From assembly GCA_964019335.1 (NCBI GenBank), contig OZ025658.1, forward strand, positions 744,001 through 808,000: a stretch of DNA of 64,000 bases, written 5' to 3'. The notes under the pieces are model-generated. The model saw only the letters and a program-made list of their open reading frames with translations, did no database searches and was not told the origin of the DNA. Both the position numbers and the translations under genes were made by a program. This DNA comes from Diplonema japonicum (lineage: Eukaryota > Protista > Euglenozoa: Diplonemea). Below, one piece after another: positions 16,401 through 60,693 of the stretch; the first letter of the stretch is position 1, and each line of letters starts with the position of its first letter.

Positions 16401-16442
16401 ATCATCAAGCTTCTGGGACACAACCCGTGCGATACGAATTAG
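13422..16442 (+). CDS. Secreted multidomain tyrosinase, copy 2 (complete, 1006 aa)
   Basis: Signal peptide; Cys-rich domain ~13510-14080; PT/PV linker; bacterial-type beta domain ~14385-14920; poly-Pro; six Cu-ligand His codons at 15108, 15132, 15159, 15510, 15522, 15588; CGDG...EECDGG.GC...C repeat ~15938-16008. Confidence 0.92.
14097..14384 (+). repeat. Coding 12-bp minisatellite encoding a (PTPV)n mucin-like linker
   Basis: Translation [12 protein letters not shown]... with synonymous variation between units. Confidence 0.9.
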
Positions 16443-21794: not shown

Positions 21795-24700
21795 ATGCAT
21801 CGCACGATGATGTTGCTGTCGCTAGCGGCATCGTGCCACGGCACCTTCTATAACCAAGGGGTACCAGTGACGCCCTTCCCCAACGTGAGGTGTTCTGACA
21901 TCAGCTTCGCAGGGTGCAGCTGCAGCACCAAGATCAGCGGCTCTGTGGTGGACGTGGAAGACGGATTCGACCGTGCCACTGACACGCTCACCTGCGGCGC
22001 GTGTGCTGGGCTGGGGATCACCTCCAACTTCGACACCACAACAGGCATCTTGCAGATGTCAGGTGACAACACCATCGACGAGTACGCACAGGCCATCGCC
22101 AGCGTCACCTTCACGTCAACATCGCGAGCTGGAACCTCGCGACGCCTGACGTACAACTACGGCCATGCCATGTACTCCACACACACGGGGCACTTCTACG
22201 AGTACTACCCGAAAAACAACGTGAACTGCAACACGGGGGGCTTCTGCCACTGGGACGACGCGCAGTCTGAGTGCGCCGACAGATCAAGGGACATCCTCGG
22301 CCTTGCTGGCTACCTTGTCACCATCACCTCGCAGGACGAACAGGACGTCACCTCGGCGAAGCTGCACGGGGAGGGTTGGATCGGTTCTGCCGACATCGCG
22401 ATGGAGGGTGAGTGGCGCTGGTTAACGGGCCCCGAAGGATGCCCCCCCTACAACCTCGCGCTGTCAGGGGCTGCAAGGACCGCATGCGACATGGGCTACC
22501 CCCTTCCTGAGAACAAGAACCCGTGCACGGGCCCCGACTGCGGACGGGGACAACTCATTGGGACCGGAAGAGGATCAAGCTTCACGACGGCCTCGGGTGC
22601 CTACGAGAACTGGGAGTCTGGTGAACCGAACGAGTACTCGAACGACTGCTCACCCGCAACATGCCAGACGACAGGTGAAGACTACGGGCACTACTATGGG
22701 AACGGAAAGTGGAACGACTACCCGAACGGGCACAACCGCATCGAGGGCTACGTGTGCGAGTGGGGCGGTGTGGGGGATCTCTGCATGGACAAAGACGACG
22801 TGTTTGGGTCGCAACTTCTAGTGGCTGGGTGCAGTTCCTACACGAACCAGGGTGCGTGCGAGTCTCGTCTCCCTGACGGCTCTTGCAAGTGGGACACGAC
22901 GCAGAGGCCCGCAAAGTGCGTGGAGACCGGGTGCCACAGGTACGGCGATGAGGCGGCTTGCGAGGGTGACGTGACGTGCGATTGGGACACGACGATGAGC
23001 CCGCCCGAGTGTGTGGACAACTACTGCGCGGTGACGCACCTTACAACGCAAGACTGCAACGCAGACAACACTGCGGAAGGCCCGTGCTACTGGAACACGA
23101 ACCTTGTGGGCGACAAGAAGTGCCAGACCCTCGTGTGTGCTGACGTGTCTGATAAGTGCAAGTGCATCCAGTCGTCGCCACAGTGCCAGTGGGACGCATC
23201 CGGTGGGGGCAGCTGCTACAACCCTGCGCTCACAACGAAAACCGCCGTCGTCTGCAGGGATGTGACCACGGAAGCCGAATGCATGGCTGACACCACCTGT
23301 ATCTGGGACTCCTCGAAAACGCCGTTGTGCCAACTTTCCGTGTGCTACTCTCTTTGCACTCAGCGGACCTGTGTCGCGAGGGCTGGGTGCACTTGGGATG
23401 GAACTGACTGTCGCCGGGAGCCTCCTGGCTGTGCTGCACACACAGACGCCGTTTCGTGCAAGCAAGACGAGAAGTGCCTGTGGAACGTGATATGGAGCAG
23501 TGCCAACACGTGCGTGGAGAACCCATGCAGGACCCACACCGACCAGCAGTCGTGCACCTCCGTCGTAGAAGAGATGCCCTCCCCATGCACGCCACGCGCT
23601 GTGAACCCCGACTACTGTTCCCTCAACGTGTGCGACTTCGACCCCTTGGGTACGCCCATCTGCTTCCCAAAGAAATGCTTGCAGACCTCCCAGGGGAACT
23701 GTGTGGCTGAGTCAGGGTGCCAGTGGGTACCCATACAAACCCCTCCCCCTGCAGGCCCTCCGTCAACTCTCGTTGCATACTGTACGACCGAGAAGTGCAA
23801 GCACTCCACATTGCAACTCTGCAACAACGATCCGTACTGTCTGTGGGACGACCAGAAGACCACCTGCGTGGAGACACCCTGTGCCAAACACCCCGACGAA
23901 CTCACGTGCAACCACGACAAAGTGTGCCACTGGGATGCTTCACGCAGCTCTGCGGTCTGCTCACCTACGGAGTGCGGTGTGTACGCGACAAAGGGGAAGT
24001 GCAAGGCGGACACGAAATGCACGTGGGACGACTCGAACCCCGCTTATTGCACAGCCGTCACCTGCGAGGGGTACAACGTGCCAAGCCCGAAGGACAAGTG
24101 CGGGTGCGTGGCGAACCCCGAGTGCTCGTGGGTTGTGGACACGACTGGCTCCGGCACCATCAACAACCACTGTGCAAAGACCTCGTACTCCACGTGCCCC
24201 GACCTGGACGTTGCCTTTGTGATCGACGGGTCGGGCTCCATGTCGGGGAACTTTCAAACTAACCACCCGCACGGCTTCAACGCGTTGATGGAGACCCTGA
24301 GGGACTGGGTGAAGACGCTCCCCCTCACAGGGGAGGACCATACTGTTGGTGGCGCGTCGACCGTGAGGGGCGGTGGTTTCCGTGTCACCTTCATCCAGTT
24401 CTCGAGGGCTGAGGCTACACCTGCGATGGACCACCCCACGAACTGCGCAGTGGGCCAGTGCACGAACGGTCTCCTTTCCGGAAACCTGAACGAGCTGATG
24501 GGCGACGTCGACTGGCATGAGGCAAACTACCAGGCGGAGTGGACGTACCTCCACGACGCCCTTCTGGACGTGGCGGATTACACCTTCCTCCCGAGTCAGT
24601 CCCCCTCTCACAGGAAGCATGTGGTGGTGATCATCGCCGACAGCGGCCTCACCGACTACGACGGCGACGCGTGCACAAGCACCTCCTGCGGGCAGTGCCC

Positions 24701-30700: not shown

Positions 30701-33700
30701 AGCAGACTGCAACGCTGATAGAGATGGCTGTGCCTGGGTGAAGCAGAACGGGCAGGACGTTTGCATCGTGGAGCCCTGTTCCTCTTCCCACAGATCGGTT
30801 TGTCTTGCTGACCCGTCTTGCAAGTGGGACTACCCTCTTTGTGGAAACACAACGCAGCTGCAGTGCATGCCCAAAGGGTGTGACTACTTCGCTGTGAAGG
30901 GAGACTGTGATGCCGACGTGCACTGCGTGTGGGACACCGCGGCCTCTACCTGCAAGGACAGGGTATGCGCGCAGCTCAGGGACGAAAGGTGCTGCGACAA
31001 GGACCCGATGTGCAAGTGGGACGTGACCACGGACCCTTCGGTCTGCGCGCAGAAGAAGTGCCCGGCGATCCAGGCGCAGCAGAAGTGCAACGAGCAGAGC
31101 GACTGCATGTGGAACTCGACGGCAAACCCCCCTACGGGGGCTTGCATAGACCTTGACTGCAGCACGTTCCCCGCCATGTGCCCGTGCAACGAACACGACA
31201 AGTGCTACTGGAAACCCGGTGCAGGTTTCGCTGGCACCGGTGCCTGTGTAGCGGTTGAGTTCGGTGAGTGCCCCACTCTTGACATCGTCCTGGTGCTGGA
31301 TGGGTCGGGCTCCATGTCCTGGAACTTCAGGCCTCGCCACGGCTTCACCGCTCTGATGGAGATGATGAGGGACTGGATCGAGACCCTGCCTTTGAACGGA
31401 GAAGCCGCCTCCGTCGGAATCAACTCGCAGAAAGACAATGGCGGTGTGCGGGTAGGAATGGTCCAGTTCTCCGGTTACAACAGTCAGACGAATACGGCAC
31501 GGAAGACTCCTGGAGGGGTAGGGACAGGGGGAAGGATCTCCGGCGCCCTACAAGAATTGGAGAACGACGTGGACTGGCACGAGGACAACTACATGGGTCA
31601 GGGAACTATGCTCGAGCAGGGTTTAACGATGGCGGCTGACATGTTCCACGCTTCTCCGGTAGACGGGAGACAGAGAGTGCTTTTCATCTTCACAGATGGG
31701 CAAATTTCCGACCCGAATTCCCTCTCCAGAGCAAGGGCAGAGCTCAACAGGGAGGGCGTGCAAGTGTTTGGTATCGTGTTGTCGACAGGACAAACCGCGA
31801 AGGCAGAGGCGACTCTGAAGCCCATCACCTCCTTGAAGCACGAGGACCACCTGAAGACCGTCGAGATCGACGAGGTGCCTGACCTCATGAGCGGGATCTG
31901 CAACCCCCATGGCCTTTGGGGTCACCTGATCGTGAAGGACCCCCCGCAGGCGTCCTCGGGTGTGCACCTCCCGTGCCCGGACTACCAGACCCACGGTACC
32001 TGCAAGAAGGACCCCGGCTGCATCTGGTCTGACGTCGGTTCCGCGTGCCTGAACTCTCCTTGTTTGTTGCACTGCAATGATTCCGCGTGTCAAGGCGACC
32101 CAACCAACAACTGCACTTGGGTAAACGGCAGCATCTGCACGAACGCTCCCGACCTGACCTGTGACTGTGCCTACACCACCGGTGACCCCATTTACAACGA
32201 GGAGAAGTGCAAGGCCGATACCATGTGCGTGTGGGATGCTGTGAACGGCGTGTGCCAGCACGACGAGTGTGCGTCGGGTCAACCGGGCAACCTCACTTGC
32301 GGTGCAGTAAACCAGATCTGCGTGGACCCCACACCTGCACCATGTACGGACGACTGGTACTGCGCCTGTGCGCCACCCGCGACACGGGACCCGGGGACAC
32401 ATGCGGGACAGGCAGCAGCTGTGTGCGTTCTTGATGAGTGCGCTGTTGACTGCCCCACCTGTGCCGGGGCAACCTGCAGTGACAAAGGTCAAGACTGTGT
32501 CGACCGGACCCCCACCGTCCCCGGAATGGGGGACTGGGTGTGCAAGTGCAAGCCTCCCTACGGTAATGAAGCGCGGGGAAACGCTGCTGTTTGCCAGATC
32601 GACGAGTGCGTGGACCAGACTTGTGCTACTTGTGCTAAGAGCACTTGCAGCGACAAGAACCAGACTTGCCACGACCCGGACACTACAGTGTTGAGCAACT
32701 GGAGGTGCCACTGCCCCTCGCCCTCGAACAGTAGCACTAAGACCGACGCAGTGTTCAGCTGCGATTTCGATGAGTGTACCGTCCACAAAGAAACCTGCGA
32801 AAACGCGGATCAGACCTGCCGCGACCCTGACCAGGCTGTGAGTGGGGACTGGATGTGTGACTGCAAGCTGCCTTCTAACGGCACGGCCAATGCACAGGTT
32901 GCTTGGTGTGAGCTCGACGAATGTGCGATGACCTGTCCCACCTGCGCGAATACTACTTGCACGGACGAGAACCAACTTTGTAGTGACACAAACAAAGCGG
33001 CTCACTCGACAGGAAACTGGATTTGCATCTGTCGGGACCCATTCAGTGGTCATGCAGATGTCGCTGCGGCGGTTTGCGAACTGGATGAGTGCTCGGCCCT
33101 GTGCACTGGGGCCACTTGTGCCAACACAACCTGCTCGGATGCGAACCAGACCTGCCATGATCCCCACTTCACGATACTGGGCGACTGGGCATGCAACTGC
33201 CCACGACCCTCGAAGCAGCAGCCCTCGAAGCTGAAGCCGGCGACGGGGTGTGAAGTGGACGAGTGCGACCTCCACAAGGCCGTGTGCGAGAACCAGGGCC
33301 AGAGCTGCGAAGACCTCGACCAGCTGGTCGCAGACAACTGGATCTGCAAGTGTGTTTCCCCCATGAACGGGACTGCCGAAGCACGGGCCGCGGACTGCAC
33401 GATCGACGAGTGTGTGGCAAGCTGTCTCACTTGTGCGAACGACACCTGCAGTAGCAAGGGCCAGACCTGCAAGGATGACCATATCTCGATACACTCCACC
33501 GCCGACTGGGAATGCAGGTGTCCATCCCCTTACTCTGGGAAGGGTCATGCAAACTCTGCCACCTGCCTTCTCGACGAATGCTCTGTGAACTGCACTGGTC
33601 CAACGTGTGCGGGTACTACTTGCAGCGACAGTAACCAGACCTGTCACGACCCGGAAACGTCGATACTGAGAAATTGGCAATGCAGCTGCCTGTCTCCGTC

Positions 33701-36700
33701 TAAGAAGCTGCCTGTAACGGGGGCACCAGTGGTGGGCTGCGAGGTGGACGAGTGCGAGCAAATGAAGCAAATCTGCGAGAACGTCGACCAGACCTGCTAC
33801 GACCCTGACCAGCTGGTGCCCAATAATTGGGAGTGCAACTGCGCGCTGCCAATGAACGGAACGAAGGTGGCAAAGCCTGCTGAGTGCACCCTTGACAAGT
33901 GCGCTGCAGACTGCGTGGGCCCAACCTGCGCAAACACCACGTGCTCGGATGCCAACCAGATCTGCCACGATCCCTCCACCGCCGCCCATTCCAAGGGGAG
34001 TCGGACCTGGACTTGCACGTGCCTTCCCCCATACACAGGTAATGCTCATGGGAGCGCTGCCATCTGCCGCATCGACGAGTGTGTGGAGGCCTGTCCGACA
34101 TGCGCGGACAACGCTTGCTCTAACGTCTCGCAGATCTGCAACGACCCCGACACGAGTATTCTGGGTGACTGGACTTGTTCGTGTCCCTCCCCCGCACAAA
34201 AGCCTTCCCAGAAGATAGGTCCCGTGACCCCATCGTGTGACGTCGACGAGTGTACCATCCACAGGAAGACCTGTGAGGCCGTTCAACAGGACTGCTTCGA
34301 CCCCGACCAGAGCAAAGTGGGGGATTGGCAATGCAAGTGCAAGCTCCCCATGAATGGGAACAGCACAGCGATGCCTGCGGAGTGCACGATCGACGAGTGT
34401 GTGATGAGCTGTCCCACTTGCGCGAACGATACCTGCAGTAGCAGGGGCCAGATTTGCGAAGACCCCGACACCTCGAAATACAACGACTGGACTTGCACCT
34501 GTCCCTTGCCTAGCACCAGTTATGCCGTGAACAATTACGCTGAGTGCGTCGTTGACGAGTGTGTGGCAAACTGCTCCACGTGCTCCCTCGGAGTCTGCAC
34601 CTCGGAAGGCCAGCACTGTCACGACCCCGATGTATCAGCGAACAGCACGGGCAACTGGATCTGCACGTGCCCGTCTCCGTCGGAAAGCTTCGCCAAGGGG
34701 ATGGTTGCGACGCCTTGTGTTGTTGATGAATGCAAAACCCCCGACAATGAGAAGATGTGTGCAGATGCCGGCCAGGAGTGTGTGGACCCGAACCCCTCGC
34801 TGAGCGGCCGCAACGACTGGGAGTGCCACTGCATTGTGCCGCCTGCTGTGAGGAACGGGTCTGCGGTGATGCGCCCTGCTGACTGCGAGTACCCAGGTGA
34901 ATGCATGACAGACCCTGAGGCGAGGAAATGTGCCGCTACCGGCCACATCTGCGATGACCTCAACACCGACCCCACTTCCACAGGCGACTGGGTGTGTATG
35001 TGTGCACCGCCTTCAAGTGGGCGGAACGTGACCGCCACCACACCTGGCGGGGTCGCAGGGATGGTGTGCGAGACGAACGAGTGTGAAGTTGTGTGTCCAA
35101 CCTGCGCGCAGACCGTGACTAGCCCTATCAATCTGTGCACTGTGGAGGGCCAAAGGTGTACCGACCCCGACACGAAGAAGTACGGTGACTGGCAGTGCGA
35201 GTGCCCCACCCCATGGGCCGGGATCCCCGCTACTACTGCTATCGCGAGCTGTTCGCTCGATGAGTGCGTTGCAGACTGCCCAACTTGCTCGAAGGGGACC
35301 TGCGCCAACGCAGGGCAGACTTGCGAAGACAGACGGACTGGGGTGCATGACCTTAGAGACTGGATGTGCGTGTGTGCGCTCCCTGCCGTGGGGAACGCTA
35401 CTGCGAAAGTGGCTGACTGCATCTGCGACGAGTGCCAGGAGGCCACTCAAAAATGCGCCTGCGGGGCAGTTCTGCTTCGACCAAGACACCAGCTGCAACA
35501 GCAAGAACGACTACATATGCGAGTGTAAGGCGCCCTTCGACGGGACGAATGACGCTCTACCGGCCTTGTGCACGGTCGACGAGTGCATTGAAAACAACGC
35601 TACCTGCACCGCCGTGGGCCAGACCTGCATCGACCACAACCGGACCCAGCTTGACGACTGGAAATGCTTGTGTCCGAGCCCCAGTCACGGGGATGAAGTG
35701 GTCGGTCAGGCGGCACGGAACTGCAAGATCGATGAGTGCGTTGACACATGCCCCACATGCGCGGGTACCACCTGCTCGGACGCGGGCCAGACCTGCAAGG
35801 ACGACGACACGGATGCCTCCAGCACGGGGGACTGGATCTGCATCTGCAAGCCTCCTGCGGCAAACAACTCCGCGACGGGGAAGCCCGCCACCTGCATCTG
35901 TGACGAGTGCGTGGACGACACCGTCTGTGCAGGTACAAACCAGTCTTGCTACGATGTGAACACCGTGTGCAACACGCCGTCTGACTTTGTTTGCGAGTGT
36001 GAGCCCCCGATGATCGGAAACGCCACAGGGGCCCCTGCCACGTGCTCCTTCGACGAGTGCGAGATCAACAGCGCCACGTGTGTTGCGCAGGGACAGGAGT
36101 GCTACGACCCCGACCTCACAAAAGTCAGCGACTGGGAATGCAGGTGCAAGCTTCCCAGCGTCGGAAATGCCACAGCTCAGGCCGCAGAGTGTGTGTACGA
36201 CGAGTGCAGGATTCAGGATTGCGCAACGTGTGCCAACGATACCTGCAGCGCTGCGGGGCAGGAGTGCGAAGACTTGGACACGAGCCCATTGGAAACGGGT
36301 ACCTGGGTGTGCAAGTGCCCATCACCATCAAACCATGCTGCAACGAGGAAGGTTGCCGAGTGTGACCTCGATGAGTGCAAGGACCCGACCAAGGCCGGAA
36401 AGTGCACAGAGATGTGCGAGCCAGGAACCCTGGATTGCGGGCAGACCTGCTACGACCCGTTTCCGACAACTGCGAGCACCGATGACTGGAAGTGCCTGTG
36501 CCCGTCTCCTGCTACGGGAAATATGACTGCTGGTCCTGTGTTGCACTGTATCTACAATGAGTGCGAAGAGATGGAGACGGTCTGCGCGGCAGAAGGACAG
36601 AAGTGTAAGGACACGAATCTCCAGACGCTGAACGACTGGACTTGCGAATGCGCATCTCCTGCTACTGGGAATGCTACGGCGAGACCGGCTCGGTGCTTGC

Positions 36701-45700: not shown

Positions 45701-48700
45701 TTCCAGGCACTGATCTCGTGGACGGAGCCCAGAAGACCCCGACAGGGACAGGAAGCGGTGGCAGGCTCTCTGGGGACAGGGCGGAGGTGAACACGGACCT
45801 CGTTTGGCAGGAGATGAACTTCATGGAGGGCGGAACTTACATCGCTGCGGCGCTTGATGTTGCCGCCGACATGTTCCAAGCCTCGCCGAAGGATGGGAGG
45901 AAAAGGGTGCTCTTGATCTTCACCGACGGGCAGATCCAAGATGCGGACAAGCTGGTGGAGGCCAGAAAGCGACTGGAACAAGAGGAAGTAATCACCTACG
46001 GTATAGTGATGAGGATTAAAAAAGACTACGCGATCACCGACACTGATGCAGAGGCTACCCTGAAACCCATCACATCAGAGCCGCATAGCGAGCACTATTA
46101 TAACCTCCTCTTGGACGAGATCCCCGAAACCCTCGACGGGCTGTGCGATCCCAAGTCCACGTGGAGCAAATCCATCGTGGACACCGCGCAGGCAGGTTTG
46201 CACAGGCCCTGTGGGAACTACAACAAGAAAGAGACCTGTAACAGAGACCCCGGGTGTGTGTTCCGCGACGTACTTGCCGCTTGCGTGGACACCCCCTGCA
46301 TGAAGCACTGCTCAGAAGGCCTCTGCAGAAACGACACTGCGAACAAATGCTACTGGAAGGTGGACGAAAGCGTGTGCTACAAGGAGGTAGGGTGCACAGG
46401 GCACCAGAACCAGCGAAACTGCGCTGCTGATGACACGTGTGCCTGGAGGGACAACAAGTGCGTCGACAAGCCTTGCGAGTACCCCGAAGAGAACAGCTGC
46501 ATCGCTGACTCAACCTACGACTGTGAGTGGTCTTCGAAGGATGGTACATGCGGGGAAAAGCCTTGTCAGCACACGGAGGCAGCAGCCTGTGTGGCGGACT
46601 CGAAGTGCCTGTGGGACACTGCGTGCGTCGGAACAGGGTTCCCCGCAATGTGTGTACGCAAGCTTTGCGACTACTCAACCGCTGCAGAGTGCACCACTGA
46701 CACACAGTGCAGCTGGAGCGCCTCAACTTGTACCATGAAGACATGTGCACCATATGCTGATGAGAGGTGCTGCAATGCGAACGAGGATGGCGAGGGCTGC
46801 CACTGGGACGTGAAACAATCACCCGCAATCTGCAGCGTAGGCCCTTGCAGATCGTACAACGAGAATATTTGCAACAGTGAGAGGGGGTGCATGTGGGAGG
46901 GGATTAGGTGCGCGGAGAAGGACTGCAACAAAATGGCTGACAGGTGTGCCTGCGAAGCAGACCCCGACTGCTTCTATAGCCCCGCTCCTGGGAAGCCGCA
47001 CTGCACCTTCCAGCGCTACGGGACGTGCCCCACGCTCGACGTGGTGGTGCTTCTGGACGGTGGGGTGTCGATGGGCGAGAAGTTCGGGCGGCATCCCCAA
47101 GGTTACTACGCCCTTGTGGAGGTTATGAGGGACTGGGCTCAGACCCTGCCCCTGAGCGGGGAGGCTGCTGACACCCCCACTGTGGCGAACTCGCAGGCCG
47201 TGCGTCTTGCATTTGTGCAGTTTGCGGGTAGCGAGAGTTGGGCTCCATCAGACCCCAGGCAGGCCCTCACCGCTACCGGTGCTGGGACTAGCGAAGGACG
47301 CCTCACCGGTTCCTTGTCTGAGGTGGAGGCCGACCTCACCTTCCAAGAGGCTAACTTCATGGGCAAGAGCCTTGTGACGCAGCCGACGGTGCAGGCCACT
47401 TACCTCCTGGCTGGTTTGCAGAAAGCGGTCAGCCTGTTCCGCACCTCGCCCGTGGACGGGAGGAAGCGGGTGCTGATCATCGTGATTGACGGTGAGCTCG
47501 ACGACGCTGACAAATACCAGACCACGAGGGCGGAGCTGGATCAGGCACAGGTGCAAATTTTCGGCGTTGTGGTGCGTCCTCGCGACATGCACACTACCCT
47601 TGACGAGAGGGCGCAGCAGACACTGCATCCCCTGGTGTCCAACCCTAAGGTTGACCACATCGTGAACGTGCAGGTGGACGAGATCGCTGCTTCGCTGAAC
47701 GGTCTGTGTGACCCTGGTCGCCCGTCTTGGGGCGAGTACGTCGGTGTGGTTGCAGAGGGGAGGCAGCCTTGCCAGCTCTACTCTGCCAAGGACTCCTGCA
47801 ACAAGGACGCTGGCTGCGTGTGGTTCGACGAGACCCTGGCTTGTGCAGACTCGCCGTGCTTGGAGCACTGTGACAGGGCGAACTGCACCGCCGACAACCT
47901 GAACCTGTGCAAGTGGAACGAGACGACGAACTCCTGTGGAAAGAAGGAAGTGTGCAGCTACCCTGCACAAACACAGTGCGTCGCTGATGCAGAGTGCGAG
48001 TGGAAGGACGATGTGTGCATCGGGAAGGAGTGCGAGCACGACAACGAGCAGGGCTGTCTTGCAGACCCCGCCGTGTGTGTCTGGGACAACGTGAGGCAGG
48101 ACTGCAAGAAGAAGCGGTGCGTGTATGACAACATGGACAGCTGCAGCTTGGACCTGGATTGCACATGGAACGTGGGGTGCGAGGTGAAGCGGTGCAACTA
48201 CTTGAATCAGACCGCATGCGAGTCAACAGAGCCAGGAATGTGCGTGTGGGACAGCAACAGAAAGTGCGTGCCCGCTCCTTGTAAACAGTACGTGAGCGAG
48301 AGGCTCTGCGCGGCAGACAACAACTGCGAGTGGAGCACTGCTATCTCCCCCGGACTTTGTGAGGTGAAGCACTGCAGAAGATACTGCGACTTACAGACGA
48401 GCATCTGCAACGCGGACGAGTGCAACCAGGACCCAACATGCTTGACCGACCCCGCCACCAGCATTTGTGAGAACAGGGTGTGCGGGATGCTGGGAGACCA
48501 GTGCGCGTGCCACAGGGAACCCGATTGCTTCTGGCTCTCAGGTGACAGGACCTGCGTGGACCAGAAGTACGGTACGTGCCCTACGCTCGACCTTGTCATA
48601 GTGTTCGGTGGGTCTGTTTCCATGAAGGAGATCTTCTGGCGACACCCACACGGTTTCGACGGGGTGGTAGAAATGCTGAGGATGTGGTTGAGCGGGTTGC

Positions 48701-51700
48701 CTCTGAGCGGCGAGAAGGCTGGGGACCCGGTCACGACGACTCCGGACTCCAGGAAGATCCGTGTAGCCTTTGTGCAATTCAGCGGTGTGGCCACAGGGCC
48801 CCTTACGAAGACCCCTATTGCCGGATCTGCGATCAAGACCCCTGCCGGTATTGGTACCGCAGGGAGGCTGTCGGGTGCTTACACGGAGCTTTCCGCAGAC
48901 CTCAGTTGGCACGAGGCAAACTTCATGGGGAACGGGATTTACGTTAACCTCGGCCTACAGATGGCAGCCAGCATTCTGCAAAACTCGCCCACTGACGGGA
49001 GGAGGAGGGCAGTGTACGTCATCACTGACGGACAGTTCCAGGACCAGGCGTACCTCGAGGACGCGAAGGCGAAGCTTGACTCTGTCGGTGCAGAGGTGTT
49101 CGGTATCGTGGTGAGGAGGTTCCCGTCGTCAAAGAACGTCGACGCCGACGCTGAGCAGTCGCTTATGTCAATCACCTCCGGTGCGCACGTTATGAACGTA
49201 GACATGGAGGAGTTTGCCTCGGAGAACGGTCCACTGGCGCAGCTGTGTAACCCTGCTACGGACTTGGGGTCCTCGATCGCAATGGGCGTGGCTAGCGACA
49301 GGCACCAGCCGTGCAATGCGTACTCCACGCAGAAGGATTGCGTGAGTGACGTGGGCTGCACGTGGAACCAACTGTCATGCAGGACGTCGCCTTGCATTAT
49401 GCACTGCAACGAAACCACCTGCAACCGGGACGGTGCGAACGACTGTGTGAACGGGTGGAACTCCGCCGAGGTGACTTGCTACCGCAAGAAGGTGTGTGCT
49501 GGAGATGTCCCGACCAGGTGCGAGGCTGAGGGTGGATGCCGGTGGAACTCATCTGCGGCTGCCTGTGAGGTGAAACCCTGCTACCACGCGCTGGAGGACA
49601 CGTGCATTGCGGATACGGACCATGCGTGCGAGTGGAAGAACTCTGAATGCACAGTGAAGCCGTGTGTGATGTATGCGACAGCGTCTGAGTGCACGGGGGA
49701 CTGCGAATGGAATTCTTCGTCTTTGAAGTGTGCCCCTGTGAAGTGTACGCCGTATACAGACAGGGACGAGTGCAAATCCGACGTTCTATGCCAATGGGAG
49801 GAAGTTTCATCCCGGTGTGCAGTGAGGCCCTGCGTGGAATACCCTGACGACCGTTGGTGCAATGCCGACAGAAAGTGCCACTGGGACACCACAGAGGCAC
49901 CTGGTAGCTGCCAACTGCTACCGTGCGCCAGGTTCGAGAACGAGACGACCTGCAGCCTCGACACGGGCTGCAAATGGGACTCCGCAGCGCAGGTGTGCGT
50001 GGAGATGACCTGCCACTCGATCCCCATGAAGTGCGAGTGTCAACAGGACTCCAGCTGCTTCTGGTCCACAGCCGGCGGCCGCGCACGCTGCGAGGAGCAG
50101 GTGTTTGGGAAATGTCCGACTCTGGATGCAGTCTTGTTACTTGACGGTTCCGCCACGATGGGCCAGAGGTTTTGGCGCCACCCACAGGGCTTCAACGCCA
50201 TGATGGAGATGATCCGTGACTGGGTAAGAATGCTGCCCTTGAGTGGAGAGCTTTCGTCGGTGGGGTCGAGCTCTGCCTCTTCCACTGGCGGTGTGAGGCT
50301 TGGACTGGTGCAGTTCAGCGGCGATCCGAACTCCGTGAACCCGGCGACCGGTGGTGTTGTGAACTCGGCTCTGAGGACGCCACCTACGGTAGGCAGTGGT
50401 GGTAGACTCAGCGGGGACCTTGCGCAGCTCGAGTCGGACGTCACATGGCACGAGGACAACTACATGGGGCAATTCAGGTTCATCGAGGAGGGGCTGAAGA
50501 TGGCTGCCGACATGCTGACAAACGACTCGCCTCTGGACGGGCGCCGTAGGATCGTCATAGTCATTACGGATGGCCTGCTGCTGGACGGTAACCGCCTCAC
50601 ATCTGTACGGGCGAAACTGCAGCAACTGCAGGTGATTACCTTCGGTATCTCTGTAAGGAAGCTCGCCCCACACAGCCCCGAGGACGACGCGGCTGACGCC
50701 GCATTGAAGCCTGTTGTCTCTGAGAACGCGGATGACCACTTCATGAGCCTCACGATGGATGAGATCCCGGAAGAGGTGTTGACTGGGCTGTGCGACCCCA
50801 ACAAAAAATGGGGAGAGTTCGTGTCGGCTGTTGGTGGTGGTTCTGCTGGAACTGGCAACGGCACAATCCCCTGCGTGCAGCTAGACGGGAAAATCACGTG
50901 CAACCGCAACATTGGCTGCATGTGGTCCGACACCACTCTGAGCTGCGGGGCAACACCTTGCCACGACCACTGCGACCAGGCAAACTGCGAGGATGACCTG
51001 GGGAACCACTGCATGTTCGACGCAGCCACCCAGAGCTGTACGAAGAAACGGCCGTGCGGTCACACCGCTGCCCCCGATTGCTGGAGGGACGCCGAGTGCA
51101 TGTGGGAGAACAGCACGTGTGTGGAGAAGCCGTGCCAACATGAAGATGAGGAACCGTGTCTGCTGGACGCTGACGGCTGCGTGTGGGACTCGGTGGAGAA
51201 GACATGTACCCCCGAACTATGCCAAAAGCTGACCAGCAAGGTTGGCTGTGACGACCTTGCTGACGTTTGTATCTGGGATACAACTGGGAACGTCTGCAAG
51301 CCGAAGAGGTGCTTGTCGTGCCCTGCTGGTAACAAGACTTGCTGTGAATCTCCGGACAACCAGCTCTGGTGCGATTACACCACTAGTAACACCTGCGTGG
51401 AGAAACGGTGCGTGGGTTACGTTGATGAGCTCTTGTGCTCGTCGGCGACGGAGAGTCAGTGTAAGTGGGACCCGACTACTTCTCCCGGGACGTGTAGGGA
51501 GAAGTACTGCGCAAAGTTCAACGAGACCACTTGCGAACTGGAGCCTGTTTGCGTCTGGGACTTCGGGGTGTGTGACACCAAGAGGTGTGAGGACGTTCAC
51601 GAGCATTGCGCATGCACGACCGACCCGAGCTGCTTCTGGCATGATGGGACGTGCGTGGACGTGCACTACGGCGCGTGCCCTACCATGGACATCGTCATAC

Positions 51701-54700
51701 TGCTGGACGGGTCATCACTGATGAAGCAGCCCTTTGGACGCTACCGAAACGGCTACTTCGCCCTTGTCGAGATGCTGAAGGACTGGACGTACCTCCTGCC
51801 CCTCCCTGGTGACATTGGTGCCGCTGGTAAAGACCCCAGCCTATACCCCGCAGGCTCCGCAAGGATTGCCCTCATACAGTTCAGCGGTGACAAGAATCTG
51901 GCCGGTGCAAACTCTGCTTTGGTGTCGACCGTCGGCGCGAAGGGTAGGCTTTCAGGCTACGTCCCCGAGCTGAGGCAGGACCTGTCCTATCAGGAGCACA
52001 AACAGATGGCAAAGGATACATTCCTGAAAGAGGCCCTTGACATGGCTGCCGGGCAGCTTTCTGGTCCCCTCTACCCCGCGGACGGGAGGAAGAAGATTGT
52101 GTTGGTTCTCCTAGGGAGCTCGGTAATGGACGAAGGCATGCTGTCTGGTCCTCTCGGGAAGATCCAAGCTGCCGGCGCGCACCTAGTCGGGATCGTGGTG
52201 AGGAGAAGTGATTCGCATAGAACGCAGGACAACGATGCGGAGGCCTCCTTGAAGCCAATTGTGACGGAGCCGAAGAGAGCGCACTTCCAGAACATCGCCA
52301 TCAACAACCTAAAGGAAGAAGTGCTCGACAAGTGGTGCGACCCGAGCACGGCTTGGGGAAGCTGGTTGGTGGACGTGAAGACTACCGATTCCCACCTCCC
52401 CTGTTCTTTCCACAGTGGCTCTTCGGAGTGCAACCGCGACTCTGGGTGCACGTGGGACGACGGGTTAGTAGCCTGCACGGTCACCCCGTGCTTGCAATAC
52501 TGCTCAAAAGCACTGTGCGAACTCTCAGATCCTGCGTACCGTTGCGAGTTCAACGTAAGCGGTGACTCAACTTGCACGAAGGAGAAGATCTGTGCCTACG
52601 CGGATGAACAGCCGTGCATGGCGAACTACGAGTGCACGTGGATGGACAACATATGCGAGCCAATCCCATGCCAACACCACACCGAGCCGGCGTGCGTGTC
52701 TGACCTTGTGGGCTGTGAGTGGGTCGGTTTGGTGGATGGCGAGTGTTTAGTGAAAACTTGTTCGCACAAGACGACCGCGAATTGCACCGACGCGGGGTGC
52801 GAATGGGACCAGGCCGCATCGGTGTGCGGGCCCAAAGTGTGCACGTACACAACAGAGAGGGAGTGCAAGGATGATGAAAGGTGCGATTGGAAGAATGCGG
52901 CGTGTGAAAAGAAGAGATGTGTCGAGCACCTGAGCGAGGGTTCTTGCATCTCGGAGGCCGGGTGTGAGTGGGAGGTGAGTTCTTCACCAGCTTACTGCAG
53001 GGAAACTTACTGCTCGATGTGGACCGCGGAGGTTGACTGCAACCTCGACGCAGCGTGTGCTTGGGACGGCTCGATCTGCGTGCCCTCTACCTGCATGAGG
53101 AACAATGGAAAGTCATGCGAATGCGCAGCCGACCCGAGCTGCTTCTGGGTGGAGTCTAGGCAGTCGTGTGTGGAGGCGGCCTTCGGGGCTTGTCCACCGC
53201 TTGATATCATGGTCGTGTTCGATGGCACCGATCCCATGCAGTGGGCATTTGGGCACCACCCTAACGGCTTTGACGCGTTGATTGAGATGCTGAAGGACTG
53301 GGTAAAGAGTCTACCTTTGAATGGGGACTCGTACATTGTGCCGAAGGCCTTGACAAAAGCTGCAGGGACCAGAGTGGCCTTCGTGCAGATCGGCACCAGC
53401 GTACAGCCTATGTTAGTGACGAGCCCCTCGAACCCATCGACACCCTCTGCTGCTGGTCTGTTGTCCGGTGACCTGAATCAGCTTCTTGGAGACCTTGTCT
53501 TCCACTCAGCCAACATGCTCGGTGGGAGCGGTGGTCGCTACATGGAGAAAGCTGTGATGCATGCGGAGACAGTTTTTTCGAGCCAAAGCCCCACGACAAA
53601 AAAACAGGTGGTGTTGATGTTGTCCAGCGGTACGGTGGCTGACGAGGACAAGATGAAACTTGCGATGGCGACTTTAGATTCGACTGTGCAGGTGTTTGGC
53701 GTGACCCTGCGCCGCTTGAAAGGCACGAGGACTCCGGAGGACAACGCCGCGGCAAGTCAGATGGAGACTTTGGTCTCGGTCACCCACGCGGAGCACTTCC
53801 TGGACCTGGAGATCGACGAGCTCAACGAGAAGGTGTTTTCCGCCCTGTGCGACAGAGCGAAAAGGTTTGGCAAGGCCATGTTGAAGGACCAAGGTGCCCC
53901 TGCTGCTGGTGTGAACCAGCCATGTGTCACTTACACTGTTGCAGCGGACTGCAGTGTAGACACCGGCTGCATGTGGTCTGAGTCCCTGTTGCAGTGCACG
54001 ACGCATCTGTGCAGATCGTATGGTTGCAACCAGGCTGCCTGCACCACAGATGTCGAGTGTGAGTGGACTCCTGAGGCTTCCTGCAGCACGAAGCCACCAG
54101 TCTGCCCCAGCAAGATCACTGAACAGGCCTGCGAAGCTGCTGTGACGCCGAATGGCGGTTGCGCATGGGTGATGGTGGACCTAAACATGTACCGCTGTGT
54201 GGAGAAGCCCTGCGTAGGCCATCGTTCGGAGGACAGCTGTATCACCGATCCGAATGTGTGTGAATGGAACTCGAAGGCCTCTGAGTGCACTAAGAAAAGG
54301 TGCACGTACCCCACGGAGCAGGAATGCGTAGCATCTCATGAGGTCTGCGAGTGGTCAGTCGACCACTGCAGGAACAAGAGATGCGTTTCTACCGACGAAG
54401 CAACATGTTCAGCTGACAACGCGTGCGAGTGGACTACTGTCTGTGAGTTCAAGAAATGCAGGAACTATGATGACGAGCCGACTTGTGACCACGACAACGA
54501 ATGCCACTGGGACGTGAGCGAGTCCCCCCCCAAGTGCGACGTGAAGTTGTGCTTGAAGTACACCTCTGAAGGTTCGTGTGAAACCGACCCTAAGCTCCGC
54601 TGCAGCTGGGACACTACGAGCAACAGGTGTGCGAATAAGGACTGCTCCAAGGTGACGGCCCCGTGCCCCTGCAACAAAGACCTGGGCTGCTACTGGGACA

Positions 54701-57700
54701 CTAGCTTCGGTACGGATGGTGCTTGCGTGTCTGGCTTGTTTGGTGGCTGTCCCTTGATGGATGTGGTGGTGTTGGTGGATGGGACGACGTCCATGAAGAG
54801 TGCGTTCGGTCGCCACGGCAATGGCTACCAGGCGGTGATGGAGCTCCTGCGGGACTGGGCCAGGAAGCTCCCACTGTCTGGGGATTCTGGGGATATAGCA
54901 GCGTCCTTGAAGGTCGACGACGGTGTCCGAGTAGGTATTGTTCAGTTCGCTGCCCAGGGCCGTGCTGCAAAAACCGGCCCCACAGTGGGAAGCGGCGGTC
55001 ACGTCACCGGCATGCTATCTGAGCTTGAGGCGGACCTGGACCACCACGAGTCGAAGATGATCGACACCGACGACGCATACATAGCGGACGCCCTGCACCT
55101 GGCGCAGGCCATGTTCACAAGACCCGAGAGGAAGAAGGTACTGATCATGATCTCTGACAGCGTCATCATTGACGCTGGGAGGGCTGAAGTGAACTCTGCT
55201 GTGAGCGCTTTGTTCGGTGCTGGGGTGAAGGCGTTTGGCGTGCTGCTGCGCCCTGCTGAAGCCTTCCCGTCGACGGCGGGGGACGCGAGGGATGCGATGC
55301 TGAACGTACTGAGTGATGTGAGGGAGGAGCACTTCTTGAATGCCCAAATTGAAGATTTGAAGACCATCCTTGATACTTTGTGCGACCCCTCACAGCAGTT
55401 CGGGCGCTTGATCGCATCTGCTGAGGGTGGTGCCGGTGTTTTGAAACGCAAGAAGCCCTGTCCCAATTACATTGAGAAGCACGACTGCAACAAGGATGCA
55501 GCTTGCAGGTGGAGCGCTTCCCTTCTGTTGTGCTCCGATTCTGCGTGCCTGCGCCACTGTGACGAAGACGTTTGCAGGGCTGACACTTCGAACCTGTGCG
55601 AGTGGGATGCAACCAAGGCCATCTGCTTCAAGAAACCCATCTGCGACCATCCGATTTCGGAATGTGCGGCTGACCCTGGTTGCGAATGGAAGGCTGCAGA
55701 CTCTGTTTGTGTGGAGAAGAAGTGCCAGCATCAAGCTGCGTCTGGCTGTCAAAGCGACCCCGTGGGCTGTATCTGGTACAGCCATACGGATCGCTGCTTG
55801 CCGCGCCCGTGTACGTACACCACCGAAACATCTTGCAACCTTGATGCTGTGTGCACGTGGGACGTCACAGTTGTCGGGACACAAGCGTGGGCCCCCTGCA
55901 TCGAGAAGCCTTGTACTACGACCGATTCCACCGAATGCTTGAGGGACGAGAGGAGATGTCAGTGGGAGTCGAACAGGTGCGTGACGAAGCCGTGCGTGCA
56001 ACACTTGAACGAGAAGACCTGCAACCATGATGAGGGCTGCCACTGGGACGTGAGCGAGTCGCCGACGACCTGCACTGAGAAGCACTGCAGGAGGTTCAAG
56101 TCCGTGGGCACGTGCAACAACGACACGAAGTGTGCTTGGAGCGGTGCCGACGATCTCTGCAAGGAGGTGGTGTGTTCAGGCCTCAGGGACCAGTGTGCGT
56201 GCAACGATAGGGAATTCTGCACGTGGGACAAGGGGAGCGCGGTGTGCAAGCACGTAGACTTCGGGGCCTGCCCGTCGATGGACGTGGCCATTCTGCTCGA
56301 CGGTTCGAAATCGATGAGCGAGTATTTCAGGCACCACTCGCAAGGCTTCGACGCCATGATTGAGGCGCTGAGGGATTGGTTCGAGTCCCTGCCCCTGACG
56401 AACCAGCCCGCGGGGGCTGCGGCAACGCTGGCCTCTGGTACGAGGATCGGCCTCATCCAATTTTCCGTTCCCAACAGCGCCCTAAAGACGCCACCTGGGA
56501 CAGGTACAGGTGGACGCTTTTCTGGGAGTCTCGCAGAGCTGCAAGCGGACCTGGACTGGCACGAGGACAACTATGCCATGCAGCCACAGAGTTACATCTC
56601 GGAGGCCTTGAACTACGCGGGCTTGATGTTCCAATCGGCTGCTGCCAGCGGAAGGGCAAAAATCCTGCTCATCCTGATAAACGAAAAAATCGACGATGCC
56701 TCGCAGCTGAATGCTGCAAGGGCCGTCTTGGAAGGACAGGGCGTAGTGACCCTTGGTGTGGTGCTGAGGAGGTTCCCTGAGCACACGCAATCAGACATAG
56801 ATGCAGGACAAGTGCTCTCGACCATCGTGTCCGAGCCGGGGGACGACCACTACATGAACATTCCGCTGGACAAGTTCTCAGACAATGTGCTGAAGGACTT
56901 TTGCAACCCGAACAGCGAGTTCGGAAGGGTGGTCCTGGCCTACCAGGGGGCAACAGGGGCTGGGCATGTGCCGTGTGGCTCTTACAGAGAAGCAGCCACC
57001 TGCTGGAAGGACGGGTTGTGCTTCTGGAATGACTTTGACGTTGCATGCCAGTGGAGCTCGTGCCACAAGCACTGCTCGCAGGCGACCTGCGAGGCGCACA
57101 GGGACGAGCAGGACAAGGCTTGTTCGTGGACTAGCGGGAGCTGCGGTAGGGTGGTGGAGTGTACGGAAACAACGGAGGCTGAGTGCAGGGCTGCAGAGTG
57201 CTACTGGGACACGACAGTGGAACCCACTTGCATTGTGATGCCGTGCACAGCGATCTCAGAGGACGGTTGCGTGGCGGACGGGTGCGAGTGGGACGACGTG
57301 GTCACTGTTTGCAAAGCAAAGGAGTGCAACGAGAAGAAGCAGATGCCATGCGACGCCAAGGAGAACTGTAAGTGGGACGGCGCAATCGATCAATGCGTGG
57401 AGAGGCCGTGTGTGCCGTACAAAACGCAGGCAAACTGCGAGAAGCACTCCTTCGACTGCAAATGGGAGGGTGGGCTTTGTACTGTGGTGAATGGGTGCGT
57501 TGTTCACACAAACGAGAAAGAGTGCAACACGGACGGTGACTGTGAGTGGAAGACCGCGCACTCGCCCGCTCACTGTGGTGTGCAGGTGTGCAGGAAGTAC
57601 GGAACGGAAACGGATTGCGAAGCGACAGATAAGGGCGCCCTGGACGGTTGCGCCTGGGACAGCACCGAAATGAAGTGTGACGAGGGTGTGATCCTTTGCA

Positions 57701-60693
57701 AAGACGAGACCACGCCGTGTTCATGCGGCCAGACGCCCGGTTGCATGTGGAACGCAGAGGCTTCGAGGTGCGGGGCGTCGATGTTCGCGAACTGCCCCGC
57801 CGTGGACTTTGTGGTCGCGATCGATGGTTCCCTCAGCATGGGCGATCGCTTCGGGCGCCACCCGCATGGCTTCTTCGCGGTGACGGAGATGGTGTTGAAC
57901 CTTGCGGAAAGGCTGCCCCTGACGGGGGAGGCTGCGAGTGTGGCCAGCAACGCGTCCCTTGCTTCTGGTTTCCGTGTCGGTATGGTGCAGTTCTCAGCAC
58001 AGGCGGTGAAAACCCCTACCGGGACTGGAACTGGGGGCAGACTGTCCGGTGTTCTTGCTGAGATTGACGACGATGTGCACTGGCACGAGGGCCAATTCAC
58101 CACACACGCGACGGACGCCTCGTACCTCACCCAAGCGATGGAGATGGCAGCGAAAATGTTTGACAGCTCGCCTGCAGACAGGAAGAAAGTGCTGCTGGTA
58201 GTCGCCGACGGAGACATCCCTGACGCGGAGGCTAGCTCGATGGTGACGGTGCAGGGGCTTCTGGAGCAGCAGAGAGTGCAGGTGTTTGCCGTTCACGTCA
58301 GGCAGTTTGATACCCCCAGCCCGCAGGATGAGAAAGCCGCCACACAGATGGAGGCTTTTGTGACAAACCCGTCAACCAGCCACGCACAGGGTGTGACAAT
58401 GAGAGAGCTGGAAGATGTGTTCACGAACCTTTGCAATGAGAGCAGCACCTTCGGTTACTTCCTCTCCAAGCACGGGGAGTCCGTGCATAAGAGCCATTGT
58501 TCGGAGTGGACAGTGCTATCAGGCTGTGAGACTGACAGCTCCTGCGCCTGGAACATGGTGAAGGAGTCATGTGTAGCGAGCTCTTGTGTGCAGCACTGCA
58601 CCCAGGAGTCGTGTGCGGCCGACGTTGGAAACATGTGCGGCTGGGATAGTGCCTCGTGCTCGAGGAAGGTGTGTGCCCACCCCGTGAGGGACACGTGCAA
58701 CGCGGTGCAGGGCTGCAGGTGGATCACTGGTGTGACCGGTGTTGAAGAGTGCGCGCCTGATGTGGGCTGCCCCGCCAGGTACACAGAAAACCTGTGCGTT
58801 GCCGACGTGAACTGCAAGTGGGACGCCGTGGGCAGCCTATGCAAGGAGAGGCACGGTTGTGTGGTATACACTTCCCTCCCGAAGTGCAACGCCGACGGGG
58901 AGTGCGCTTGGAACACCGCCACCGCGCAGTGCGAGGACAAAACTGGATGCGCTGTGCACACAGCCGAGCAGACCTGTACCCCCGATGCTTTGTGCAACTG
59001 GGACGCGGTGAACAGCGTGTGCGTGGAAAAGAACTGTGCGTACTACAAAGACGTGACAGCGTGCGAAGCACCGGAAGTGGGGGGTGCCTGCAAGTGGAAC
59101 ACCACGGATGGAAAATGCATAGAAGTGGCCGGCTGCGCATCGTACAACGCTGATGCGGGATCGGCACATGCCAACTGCAACAACGACATCGCGTGTGAGT
59201 GGAAGGAGAATACTTGTGTGGATAAGTATGGATGTGCGAAATACCTTGCGGAGGTGATCTGCGACAGGAGCAGGGACGAGAATGGCGTGCAGTGCGCATG
59301 GAACGGCACCGTGTGCGAGCAGGCAAAGGGGTGCGCCCGCCACACCGACAGCACAACATGCTTTGGCAGCCCTGCCGGGAACTGCGACTGGTTCACCGGT
59401 GACGACATGGGGACAGCCAGTGGCGAAGCGGTGTGCGCCGAAGAGTGTGCGGCGAGGACCTCCGAGCCTGTGTGCACAGAACAAGCAGGCTGCGGTTGGG
59501 TCGACGGCAGCAAGTGCGTGAAGTTAGGCTGCGCGGTGCACACGATGAAGCAGCCCTGTGACGACGACAGCAGAATCGGCGGGTGCGAGTGGCTGCCCGA
59601 CGAGGCAAAGTGCATGCCCAGGAGCCCTGGTGCGTGCTTTATGCGGGACACGAAGGAGTCCTGCACCGCGGGCACCAGTTCTGAGCTGAACAAATGCAAG
59701 TGGGTAGAGGCGAACGACAAGGATGCGGCACCTGAGCAACTTGACGGGGCGTGTATTGTTAACCCCAACCATGGAAAGTGCGGTTTAAGTAACGCAGAAT
59801 GCTGCAAGTGTAAGCCCGGGTGGTCAGGCCCTGAGTGCAACGTGTGCGGCTTCGACGAGTCGAGCGACAGGGAGGTGTGCACGTTGTGCAGCAGGGAAGG
59901 CACCTGCTCGGGGCACGGGAAGTGTGGGGAAGACAACCTGTGCGTGTGCGACGGCGGGTGGACCGGGGCGGACTGCAGCCTCCGAGGGTGTGCAGACACG
60001 GCCCCCTACTGGTACACGGCGTACCCGAACCAGCCACTGAGGGGTGAGACTTTCAGCTTAATCATCCATGGGTGCTTCAACGCAAGCAGCACGAAGGACC
60101 GCGTCGTGCGTGTAGTGAACGCGACGACAGGGGACCCTGTCGAGGACTGCAAGCAGACAGCCTCGCAGTGCACGGAAACAGAGGTCAACAATGGGCTGAA
60201 GATTGGTGCAGGGGACTGCATGAAGGCGGTACAACAGAACACGTCGTTGGTGGAGCCCGTGGCGGAGATGGAGCTGCTGGTGGACGTGACAGCGACCTTC
60301 GAGGCGACAAGGAACGAGTACACAGTGTGCTGGTTTGATGGGACCGGCTTCAAGCCGCTTGTGACGCACGACCGCGATGGGGACAGGAAGGACACAATCA
60401 AGGTCACTGCCGAGCGGGATGCTGATACCGGTCTCGCAACCGAGAGGGCCACACCTGCAAGTGAGGAGTGCTGCGAGGGGCTGAAGCTGGGTGAGCTGTG
60501 CCTCCCTGCTGCCCTGGTACTTGTGCTGTGGATTGTGCTCGTTGCCCTCATCGTCTACCTTGCCTTCTTCCTGGTCAAGAGCCAGAAGGAAAAGGCCGAA
60601 CTGGACGGTGGGTCCAACAAGAAGTTCGACGACTTCGAAATGGAGGACGGCAACCGCACCATGCTCAGGGACGAAGACAAGGTGGTCAACTAG
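21795..60693 (+). CDS. Giant type-I membrane protein (~12,970 aa): C-type lectin / vWA / EGF-like / CxW-repeat adhesin-like; one frameshift at ~35457
   Basis: Signal peptide at 21795; single TM at 60508-60576; short tail to TAG at 60691-60693. The Cys repeat pattern runs continuously from the 4577-aa ORF into the 8502-aa ORF at AAATGCGCCTGCGGGGCAG. Confidence 0.88.
21849..22775 (+). other. Cadherin-like beta domain + C-type lectin 1 (EPN/WND intact)
   Basis: GILQMSG...EYAQAIASVTF; TGHFYEY...WDDAQ..C...GYLVTITSQDEQ...WIG.AD...EGEWRW.TGPE...WESGEPN...EDYG...WND...GYVCEW. Confidence 0.85.
24195..31910 (+). repeat. vWA domains 1-5 separated by CxW Cys-rich repeats
   Basis: CPxxD-hhhhh-DGSxS starts at 24195, 26175, 28077, 29688, 31269. 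Confidence 0.9.
32262..37527 (+). repeat. 32 tandem EGF-like repeats (DEC...C-x3-GQ-x-C-x-D...DW-x-C-x-C..P..G...C)
   Basis: Counted from the translation; 6-Cys and 8-Cys variants mostly in a period-3 order. Confidence 0.8.
38482..58440 (+). repeat. vWA domains 6-18 in ~1.5-kb units with CxW linkers
   Basis: Starts at 38482, 40033, 42409, 43969, 45481, 47026, 48577, 50113, 51676, 53191, 54748, 56269, 57793. Spacing is 1512-1563 nt except across the lectin-2 insert. Confidence 0.9.
41200..41970 (+). other. Cadherin-like beta domain + C-type lectin 2 (degenerate sugar site)
   Basis: TGHYYRYY...WEDAKQAC...GYLMTVTSDTE...WMG...WTW.TGPE...WMSGEPS...EWGS...GYACEW. Confidence 0.8.
59770..60576 (+). 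other. Membrane-proximal EGF domains, stalk and transmembrane helix
   Basis: CKCKPGWSGPEC; CSGHGKC...CVCDGGWTGADC; AALVLVLWIVLVALIVYLAFFLV followed by K. Confidence 0.85.

Follow-up and report, generated by a model that had tools for sequence, protein, structure and literature searches.

Does a 38.9-kb coding block in the diplonemid Diplonema japonicum (Euglenozoa) encode a single surface protein of about 13,000 residues, or is its reading frame broken? The block lies in a 64,000-nucleotide window of contig OZ025658.1 (C11:744001-808000 in a 62.5-Mb, 132-contig assembly); its paralogs are named by contig. A preliminary description made from the window had proposed one intronless 38.9-kb frame for a giant single-pass adhesion protein. 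According to our analysis, the locus is probably a recently broken member of a family encoding type I membrane adhesins of about 13,000 residues from single exons, in which a 2-bp deletion ends the frame.

A reading frame divided by a two-nucleotide deletion

The coding block occupies positions 21795-60693 of the plus strand, and its length of 38,899 nt is not divisible by 3. It holds two very long plus-strand open reading frames (ORFs), 21795-35528 (4,577 aa from an ATG) and 35185-60693 (listed as 8,502 aa), which overlap by 344 nt and differ in frame (21795 is 0 and 35185 is 1 modulo 3). Frame +1 is open from 35185 to 60693. Three-frame translation of positions 34995-35700 revealed that the repeat pattern switches frame, with ...CDECQEATQKCA in frame 0 continued by APAGQFCFDQD...DYICEC in frame +1. 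In alignments with six paralogs (69-73% nucleotide identity) the gap is exactly 2 nt, and all six paralogs are in frame at the site. An intron as the source of the frame change was ruled out by the same alignment, which is base-for-base with the 2-nt gap alone. The 38.9-kb block in this locus is not one reading frame: the frame is broken. The division into two ORFs noted earlier was no quirk of prediction, because the block is truly split.

The deletion was compared with contigs from four public runs over positions 32500-38499; such contigs drop minor variants. A contig of run X1 (study P1; 34052-37599, depth 17.6), a contig of run X4 (study P2; 34364-35733, depth ~785) and a short contig of run X7 (35335-35512) all cross the site with 0 differences and 0 gaps. 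The X4 depth was 785 at the break-crossing contig versus 798 and 812 in neighbouring contigs, and no indel variant was listed at 32500-38499 in any of the four runs. Because contigs built separately from runs of two studies match across the site, the deletion belongs to the organism's DNA and did not arise through assembly or polishing. Misassembly, for which the preliminary description had allowed, is not seen across the break in either study.

In runs X6 and X7, whose kind is not recorded, this copy is covered in short pieces only, at a depth of 2-6. Longer contigs of these runs (depth 10-35) meet it through ~24-nt matches alone and probably originate elsewhere, perhaps from paralogs. Should X6 and X7 derive from RNA, they would point to weak expression of this copy relative to its sister genes.

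Translation from the conserved start would stop 24 codons past the deletion, and the first ORF (ORF A) ends in 24 out-of-frame residues followed by the stop. It comprises the signal peptide, module K1, lectin 1, VWA domains 1-5 with their CxW spacers and ~19 EGF-like (epidermal growth factor-like) units. The predicted product is a 494-kDa secreted fragment lacking both stalk and anchor; alternatively, truncation may leave no stable product. Translated across the break, with X at that position, the block would encode 1,400 kDa, in agreement with the earlier estimate of ~1.4 MDa, with a total of 1,140 cysteines.

Intact paralogs and the age of the break

A search with one VWA unit returned 150 matches in the genome (shorter frames among them were set aside). 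At least eight other loci carry uninterrupted frames of 12,987-13,165 aa, and one more has a frame of 12,056 aa. These are located on C63 (13,017 and 13,035 aa), C64 (13,001 aa), C61 (13,026 aa), C5 (12,987 aa), C111 (13,159 aa twice), C14 (13,165 aa) and C99 (12,056 aa). The VWA matches of the window copy are split over two frames of 4,578 and 8,524 aa. Four whole paralogs (C63a, C64a, C61 and C63b; 12,990-13,023 aa) have the module order of the window copy, and they share the start MHR..M..SL.ASC..T.Y.QGVP as well as the tail. The window copy aligns with them colinearly from end to end over ~12,900 residues at 75-80% amino acid identity; the four share 82-93% identity among themselves. Start, module order, transmembrane (TM) helix and tail are the same in the intact paralogs and the window copy, whereas the paralogs have neither the deletion nor five DxSxS changes private to the window copy. 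The proposal of a single-pass surface adhesion protein of ~13,000 residues holds for the family, as predicted from the intact paralogs, but not for this locus with its predicted anchorless fragment. No broken member of the family had been documented before the window copy.

Relatives at 35-43% identity were found in the EukProt transcriptomes of Rhynchopus euleeides, Namystynia karyoxenos and Hemistasia phaeocysticola, and also in a 2-Mb ENA contig. The family is transcribed in Rhynchopus, Namystynia and Hemistasia. Their proteins follow the same grammar of module K, runs of ~8 CxW units, VWA domains, EGF-like arrays of 15-20 units and a TM helix, with a tail that contains ...FEMEDG or a near variant. 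Classical signal peptides are present at the N-terminus in these other diplonemids.

Together, some ten genes of ~39 kb, each a single exon, would encode lectin/VWA adhesins of 1.4 MDa, in a family that extends across four diplonemid genera and constitutes candidate prey- or host-contact machinery. To our knowledge, the family proteins would be among the largest predicted for any eukaryote.

Pairwise identities among the five genes are not tree-like, and gene conversion within the family is suggested. C63a and C63b, which lie on the same contig, are 98-99% identical in nucleotide sequence over the TM/tail region and ~82% identical overall. No recent gene-conversion tracts were visible between the window copy and the four paralogs, with a top identity of 92% in any 300-nt window. 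Of the five genes compared, the window copy has diverged furthest.

Against C61, the pairwise Nei-Gojobori ratio of nonsynonymous to synonymous divergence (dN/dS) was 0.124 upstream and 0.115 downstream of the break, with dS ~1; the remaining gene pairs showed similar behaviour. Of the sites that do not vary among the four paralogs, 11.4% upstream and 10.7% downstream are changed in the window copy. All paralog-invariant cysteines are retained on both sides (439/439 upstream and 701/701 downstream), and the deletion is the sole lesion in 38.9 kb, with no second stop or shift. The divergence from its sisters (dS ~1) marks the locus as an old, distinct member of the family as a lineage, and the substitution pattern indicates that purifying selection acted over the entire gene up to a very recent date. 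The deletion is very young unless expression of the downstream part somehow continues; judged by these data, the break looks very recent. Overall constraint is unchanged despite the five private DxSxS changes.

How firmly can a recent loss of the full-length protein be concluded? Several points count against it. The intactness of the 25 kb downstream is equally compatible with downstream expression through some bypass, and the contigs drop minor variants, which leaves room for a second, intact allele. No run is recorded as RNA. The five private DxSxS changes lie downstream of the break, in a lineage that had already diverged functionally, and the ligand, localisation and extended shape of the protein are all inferred. 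Some of these points would suit an unlikely but tenable alternative, in which the full-length 1.4-MDa protein is still produced, either because only one allele or only a fraction of the culture carries the deletion, or by a +1 ribosomal shift within the 70 nt from the deletion to the frame-0 stop. There is zero decay across the 25 kb downstream, and a minor allele would be invisible in contigs. However, the four runs have no listed indel variant and the X4 depth is even across the site; the paralogs require no shift there, and no known slippery signal was seen, though no search was aimed at one.

The remaining explanations are far less probable. An assembly or polishing error in an intact gene would be in keeping with the indels that long-read assemblies commonly have near short C/G runs, and every sister gene is intact; yet contigs assembled separately in two studies reproduce the window exactly, one of them at a depth of ~785, so that an error is largely refuted and very unlikely. 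We give equally little credence to a pair of distinct genes, one for a secreted protein of 4,577 aa and one for a membrane protein of ~8,400 aa translated independently. ORF callers do give two ORFs with a 344-nt overlap, but the break falls within an EGF-like unit, both halves are colinear with single-ORF paralogs, and no intergenic spacer is available for a trans-splice acceptor. The downstream frame, moreover, lacks a signal peptide, and no ATG occurs in it until position 36010, 182 codons past the break. Least credible of all is an old, decaying pseudogene: the copy is the most divergent of the five and has private DxSxS losses in five VWA domains, but a single lesion in 38.9 kb, dN/dS of 0.12 on either side and the loss of 0 of 1,140 conserved cysteines argue against long decay. 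A recently broken family member is the most probable reading, and the copy can be regarded as a natural truncation allele and as a warning for annotation.

Modules of the predicted protein

The features of the coding block are listed in Table 1. Most of the architecture given in the preliminary description was recovered, including a signal-peptide-like N-terminus, the single TM helix and the short tail, for which ~39 residues had been claimed.

Table 1. Features of the coding block (positions in the window; w/o, without).
Feature	Position	Strand	Details
ORF A	21795..35528	+	Frame 0, 4,577 aa, 494 kDa
Signal-peptide-like N-terminus MHRTMMLLSLAASCHG	21795..21842	+	Conserved in paralogs
Module K1	21855..22169	+	~105-aa beta-sandwich, one helix
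C-type lectin 1	22212..22784	+	Pfam Lectin_C 28.1 bits; EPN and WND
First CxW four-Cys array	22830..24140	+	13 units
VWA 1-5 with a CxW spacer after each	24195..31907	+	DxSxS intact in 5/5
Array of 32 EGF-like units (xDEC...Q.C.D...DW.C.C..P..G...C)	32256..37509	+	Frameshift inside
2-nt deletion	~35458..35459	+	TGCGC--CTGCGGGG vs six paralogs; frame 0 to +1 within an EGF-like unit
Continuation in frame +1	35464..60693	+	8,409 codons and stop; w/o further stop or shift; colinear with paralogs through TM helix and tail
Module K2	37726..38031	+	
VWA 6 and VWA 7 with spacer	38482..40707	+	VWA 7 SGSGS instead of DGSGS, in this copy only
Module K3 and C-type lectin 2	41203..41985	+	Pfam Lectin_C 29.4 bits; EPS, w/o WND
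Eleven supra-repeats of ~515 aa, each VWA and ~9 CxW units (VWA 8-18)	42409..59613	+	Mutual identity 33-47%
Classical EGF pair (C.C..GW.G..C)	59773..59985	+	EGF_Teneurin 25.4 bits vs cut-off 24.3; EGF_2 21.0 vs 22.1
Juxtamembrane region, ~165 aa	59986..60480	+	No identity assigned
Transmembrane helix LCLPAALVLVLWIVLVALIVYLAFFLV	60496..60576	+	Single, strongly hydrophobic
Cytoplasmic tail, 38 aa, invariant KKFDDFEMEDGNRTMLRDED, then stop	60577..60693	+	

The 18 VWA domains claimed earlier, arranged as 5+2+11, were recovered with our own hidden Markov model; matches to Pfam VWA (PF00092) scored 161-194 bits versus a cut-off of 23.8 (E 1e-47 to 1e-57). VWA 10 together with nine CxW units was modelled with AlphaFold2 from 62 in-register copies (pLDDT 84.5). 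In Foldseek searches the VWA model resembled integrin alpha I domains, CMG2/TEM8, von Willebrand factor A3 and Toxoplasma MIC2 (E ~1e-8, TMt up to 0.83), with E 6e-9 and TMt 0.78 for 1mhp_A and TMt 0.83 for 8fz4_A. The predicted fold is alpha/beta, of the integrin I-domain type. In the window copy, DxSxS is intact in VWA 1-6, 8, 17 and 18 and altered in VWA 7 and 9-16, and motif inspection found the full metal-ion-dependent adhesion site (MIDAS) set of DxSxS, Thr and Asp in VWA 2-6. VWA 1-6 have an intact DxSxS across all five genes, while several membrane-proximal VWA domains are altered. The private changes, in motifs that are conserved in the four paralogs, fall within 39658-55000 and read SGSGS in VWA 7, DGSAT in VWA 10, GGSVS in VWA 12, DGSAT in VWA 13 and DGSSL in VWA 14.

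Both C-type lectins, as described before, exceed the Pfam PF00059 cut-off of 22.6 bits (28.1 and 29.4). Each of the five genes keeps the EPN and WND motifs of lectin 1, while lectin 2 shows EPS and lacks WND.

Next to the lectins lie copies of a module of ~105 aa, here termed module K, three in all. They had been described as cadherin-like; of this claim the three modules stand, but the cadherin identity found no support in Pfam, PDB profile search, Foldseek or VIA-align. Module K gave no Pfam cadherin match at E<=1 and no PDB profile match at E<=10, and the cadherin motifs DxD, DxNDN and LDRE are absent from its 15-sequence consensus. A module K profile retrieved 1,636 large proteins with about 5 up to 42 tandem copies. 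Six of these relatives were scanned with Pfam; the repeat period was ~133 aa, DUF4347 was matched in one of them and Cadherin_3/Cadherin_4 in two. The sole lead in the ESM Atlas was a bacterial DUF5416 cluster (0.91). Module K is a real, widespread adhesin module, for which a cadherin label is not established.

The count of 32 EGF-like units was reproduced, with 30 units carrying [DN]EC and two variants. A consensus of 26 units, inspected by eye, displays the six-Cys pattern with D-x-D/N-E-C and C-x-D/N-...-aromatic-x-C-x-C. The array gave no Pfam EGF match at E<=1, and its PDB profile matches were to fibrillin-1 (E 0.11) and protein S (E 3.6); only the C-terminal EGF reaches the Pfam cut-off. 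The 32 units may thus be termed EGF-like by their Cys/DxDEC pattern and insignificant profile matches.

The four-Cys CxW spacers noted earlier are present, but their number is ~175 (178 matches, 171 near full length) rather than roughly 200. Each unit reads C-x8-C-x5-C-x-W-x6-7-C over ~29 aa and, in the model, forms a short helix and then a beta hairpin. Scanned unit by unit with Pfam, PSI (PF01437) was matched by 18/83 units (best E 6.8e-4) and Paramecium_SA (PF01508) by 11/83 (best E 7.4e-5, 23.6 bits versus a cut-off of 21.2). The first CxW array scanned whole (22830-24194) gave no PSI match. A PSI identity is not supported, given four cysteines against the eight-Cys plexin-repeat pattern and the weak matches. 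In a search with an 83-unit CxW profile, the best solved relatives were C-terminal domains of the variant surface glycoproteins (VSGs) of T. brucei (8q0p, E 0.018; 8q0e, E 0.36; 5m4t, E 1.2), with all four cysteines aligned. Pfam Trypan_glycop_C was matched by one of the 83 units (E 0.22). A fold search with the 515-aa VWA-plus-CxW model returned VWA matches only, and the ESM Atlas search with a CxW spacer gave nothing usable.

Type I topology signals are combined with adhesion-type VWA and lectin domains and a conserved tail, and the intact binding motifs cluster at the N-terminal, membrane-distal end. In the intact protein, this end would carry a Ca-dependent lectin of the mannose/glucose type (EPN/WND), together with six VWA domains whose DxSxS is complete, presumably forming the ligand-binding head. 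The 32-unit EGF-like rod and the eleven supra-repeats of one VWA and nine CxW units may constitute a disulfide-stiffened stalk, perhaps a few hundred nanometres long by typical module sizes. A single TM helix and the conserved acidic tail would anchor the protein to the cell, and the tail may couple it to cytoplasmic partners. Through its Ca-dependent sugar-binding lectin and metal-dependent VWA sites, the tip could attach to prey, hosts, particles or the cell coat.

Comparison with known systems and genomic surroundings

Apicomplexan adhesins of the TRAP/MIC2 type, integrin I domains and ANTXR proteins (CMG2, TEM8) likewise combine type I topology, a short acidic tail and ligand binding by a MIDAS-bearing VWA domain. 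Among their structures, 1mhp, 1sht, 3n2n and 4okr are matched by the VWA model (E ~1e-8), at a sequence identity of 13-19%. These proteins differ in having one VWA domain, 50-1,200 aa, and neither CxW stalk nor lectin head. Calcium-binding EGF rods of fibrillin and Notch consist, as here, of tandem six-Cys units with a D-x-D/N-E-C start and C-x-D...aromatic-x-C-x-C; by comparison, the units in the window have a longer C3-C4 loop and W in place of Y/F, and many have two extra cysteines (CPTC). The tails of the integrin-beta-like Sib proteins of Dictyostelium contain NPxY talin-binding motifs; this motif is absent from the tail KSQKEKAELDGGSNKKFDDFEMEDGNRTMLRDEDKVVN. Giant bacterial repeat adhesins of the LapA, SiiE or ice-binding type have a long extender of small repeats with ligand-binding modules placed distally. 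They share the presumed working principle, and a repeat homologous to module K occurs in large proteins. In contrast to them, the family comprises predicted eukaryotic type I membrane proteins, with disulfides instead of Ca-bound Ig-like repeats and without a type I secretion signal.

Literature searches on diplonemid VWA, lectin or giant surface proteins retrieved nothing relevant, and the D. papillatum genome paper is silent on the family's domains; the claim that this architecture had not been described agrees with the literature searched. A modular adhesin is a known kind of protein; the apparent novelty lies in its size and architecture, in the CxW module and in a tenfold diplonemid family.

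PSI, the Paramecium surface antigen and the VSG C-terminal domain all give marginal scores to the CxW unit, and PSI has eight cysteines against its four. VSG C-terminal domains are small modules classed by cysteine positions (PMC9956791). Kinship of the CxW unit with them is a lead rather than a result; if confirmed, it would have implications for how the coat proteins of trypanosomes arose. A broader and rather doubtful idea is that these are undescribed euglenozoan surface megaproteins in which CxW shares ancestry with the VSG C-terminus, genes near chromosome ends exchange sequence, and broken copies belong to a system of turnover or variation.

Arrays of the 8-mer CCCGCAAA occur at contig ends (C1:4-379, C3:999811-999962, C4:4-323 and C5:3-79), and the pattern has 5,552 matches genome-wide. 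As estimated from its VWA matches, the C5 paralog ends ~7 kb from the contig end that bears CCCGCAAA. The family may be subtelomeric.

Two further contigs contain paired copies. On C64, a partial family copy at 151192-165726 (+), with an open frame of 6,565 aa, is mirrored at 194905-209481 (-), and paired coordinates sum to 360,673; either the 5' half of the gene has been duplicated in inverted orientation or the assembly contains a palindrome. C111 has two family copies (~73.9-106.7 kb and 119-152 kb) with identical scores and a spacing of exactly 45,382 bp, representing a tandem duplication or an assembly artefact.

Upstream of the coding block on the same strand, the window contains ORFs with tyrosinase domains (109-1986 and 13422-16442) and an ORF with trefoil and DUF5054 domains (7116-9401, +). 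A 1,115-aa ORF at 9594-12941 (+) pairs a kinesin motor with a right-handed beta-helix / NosD-like region, an unusual combination.

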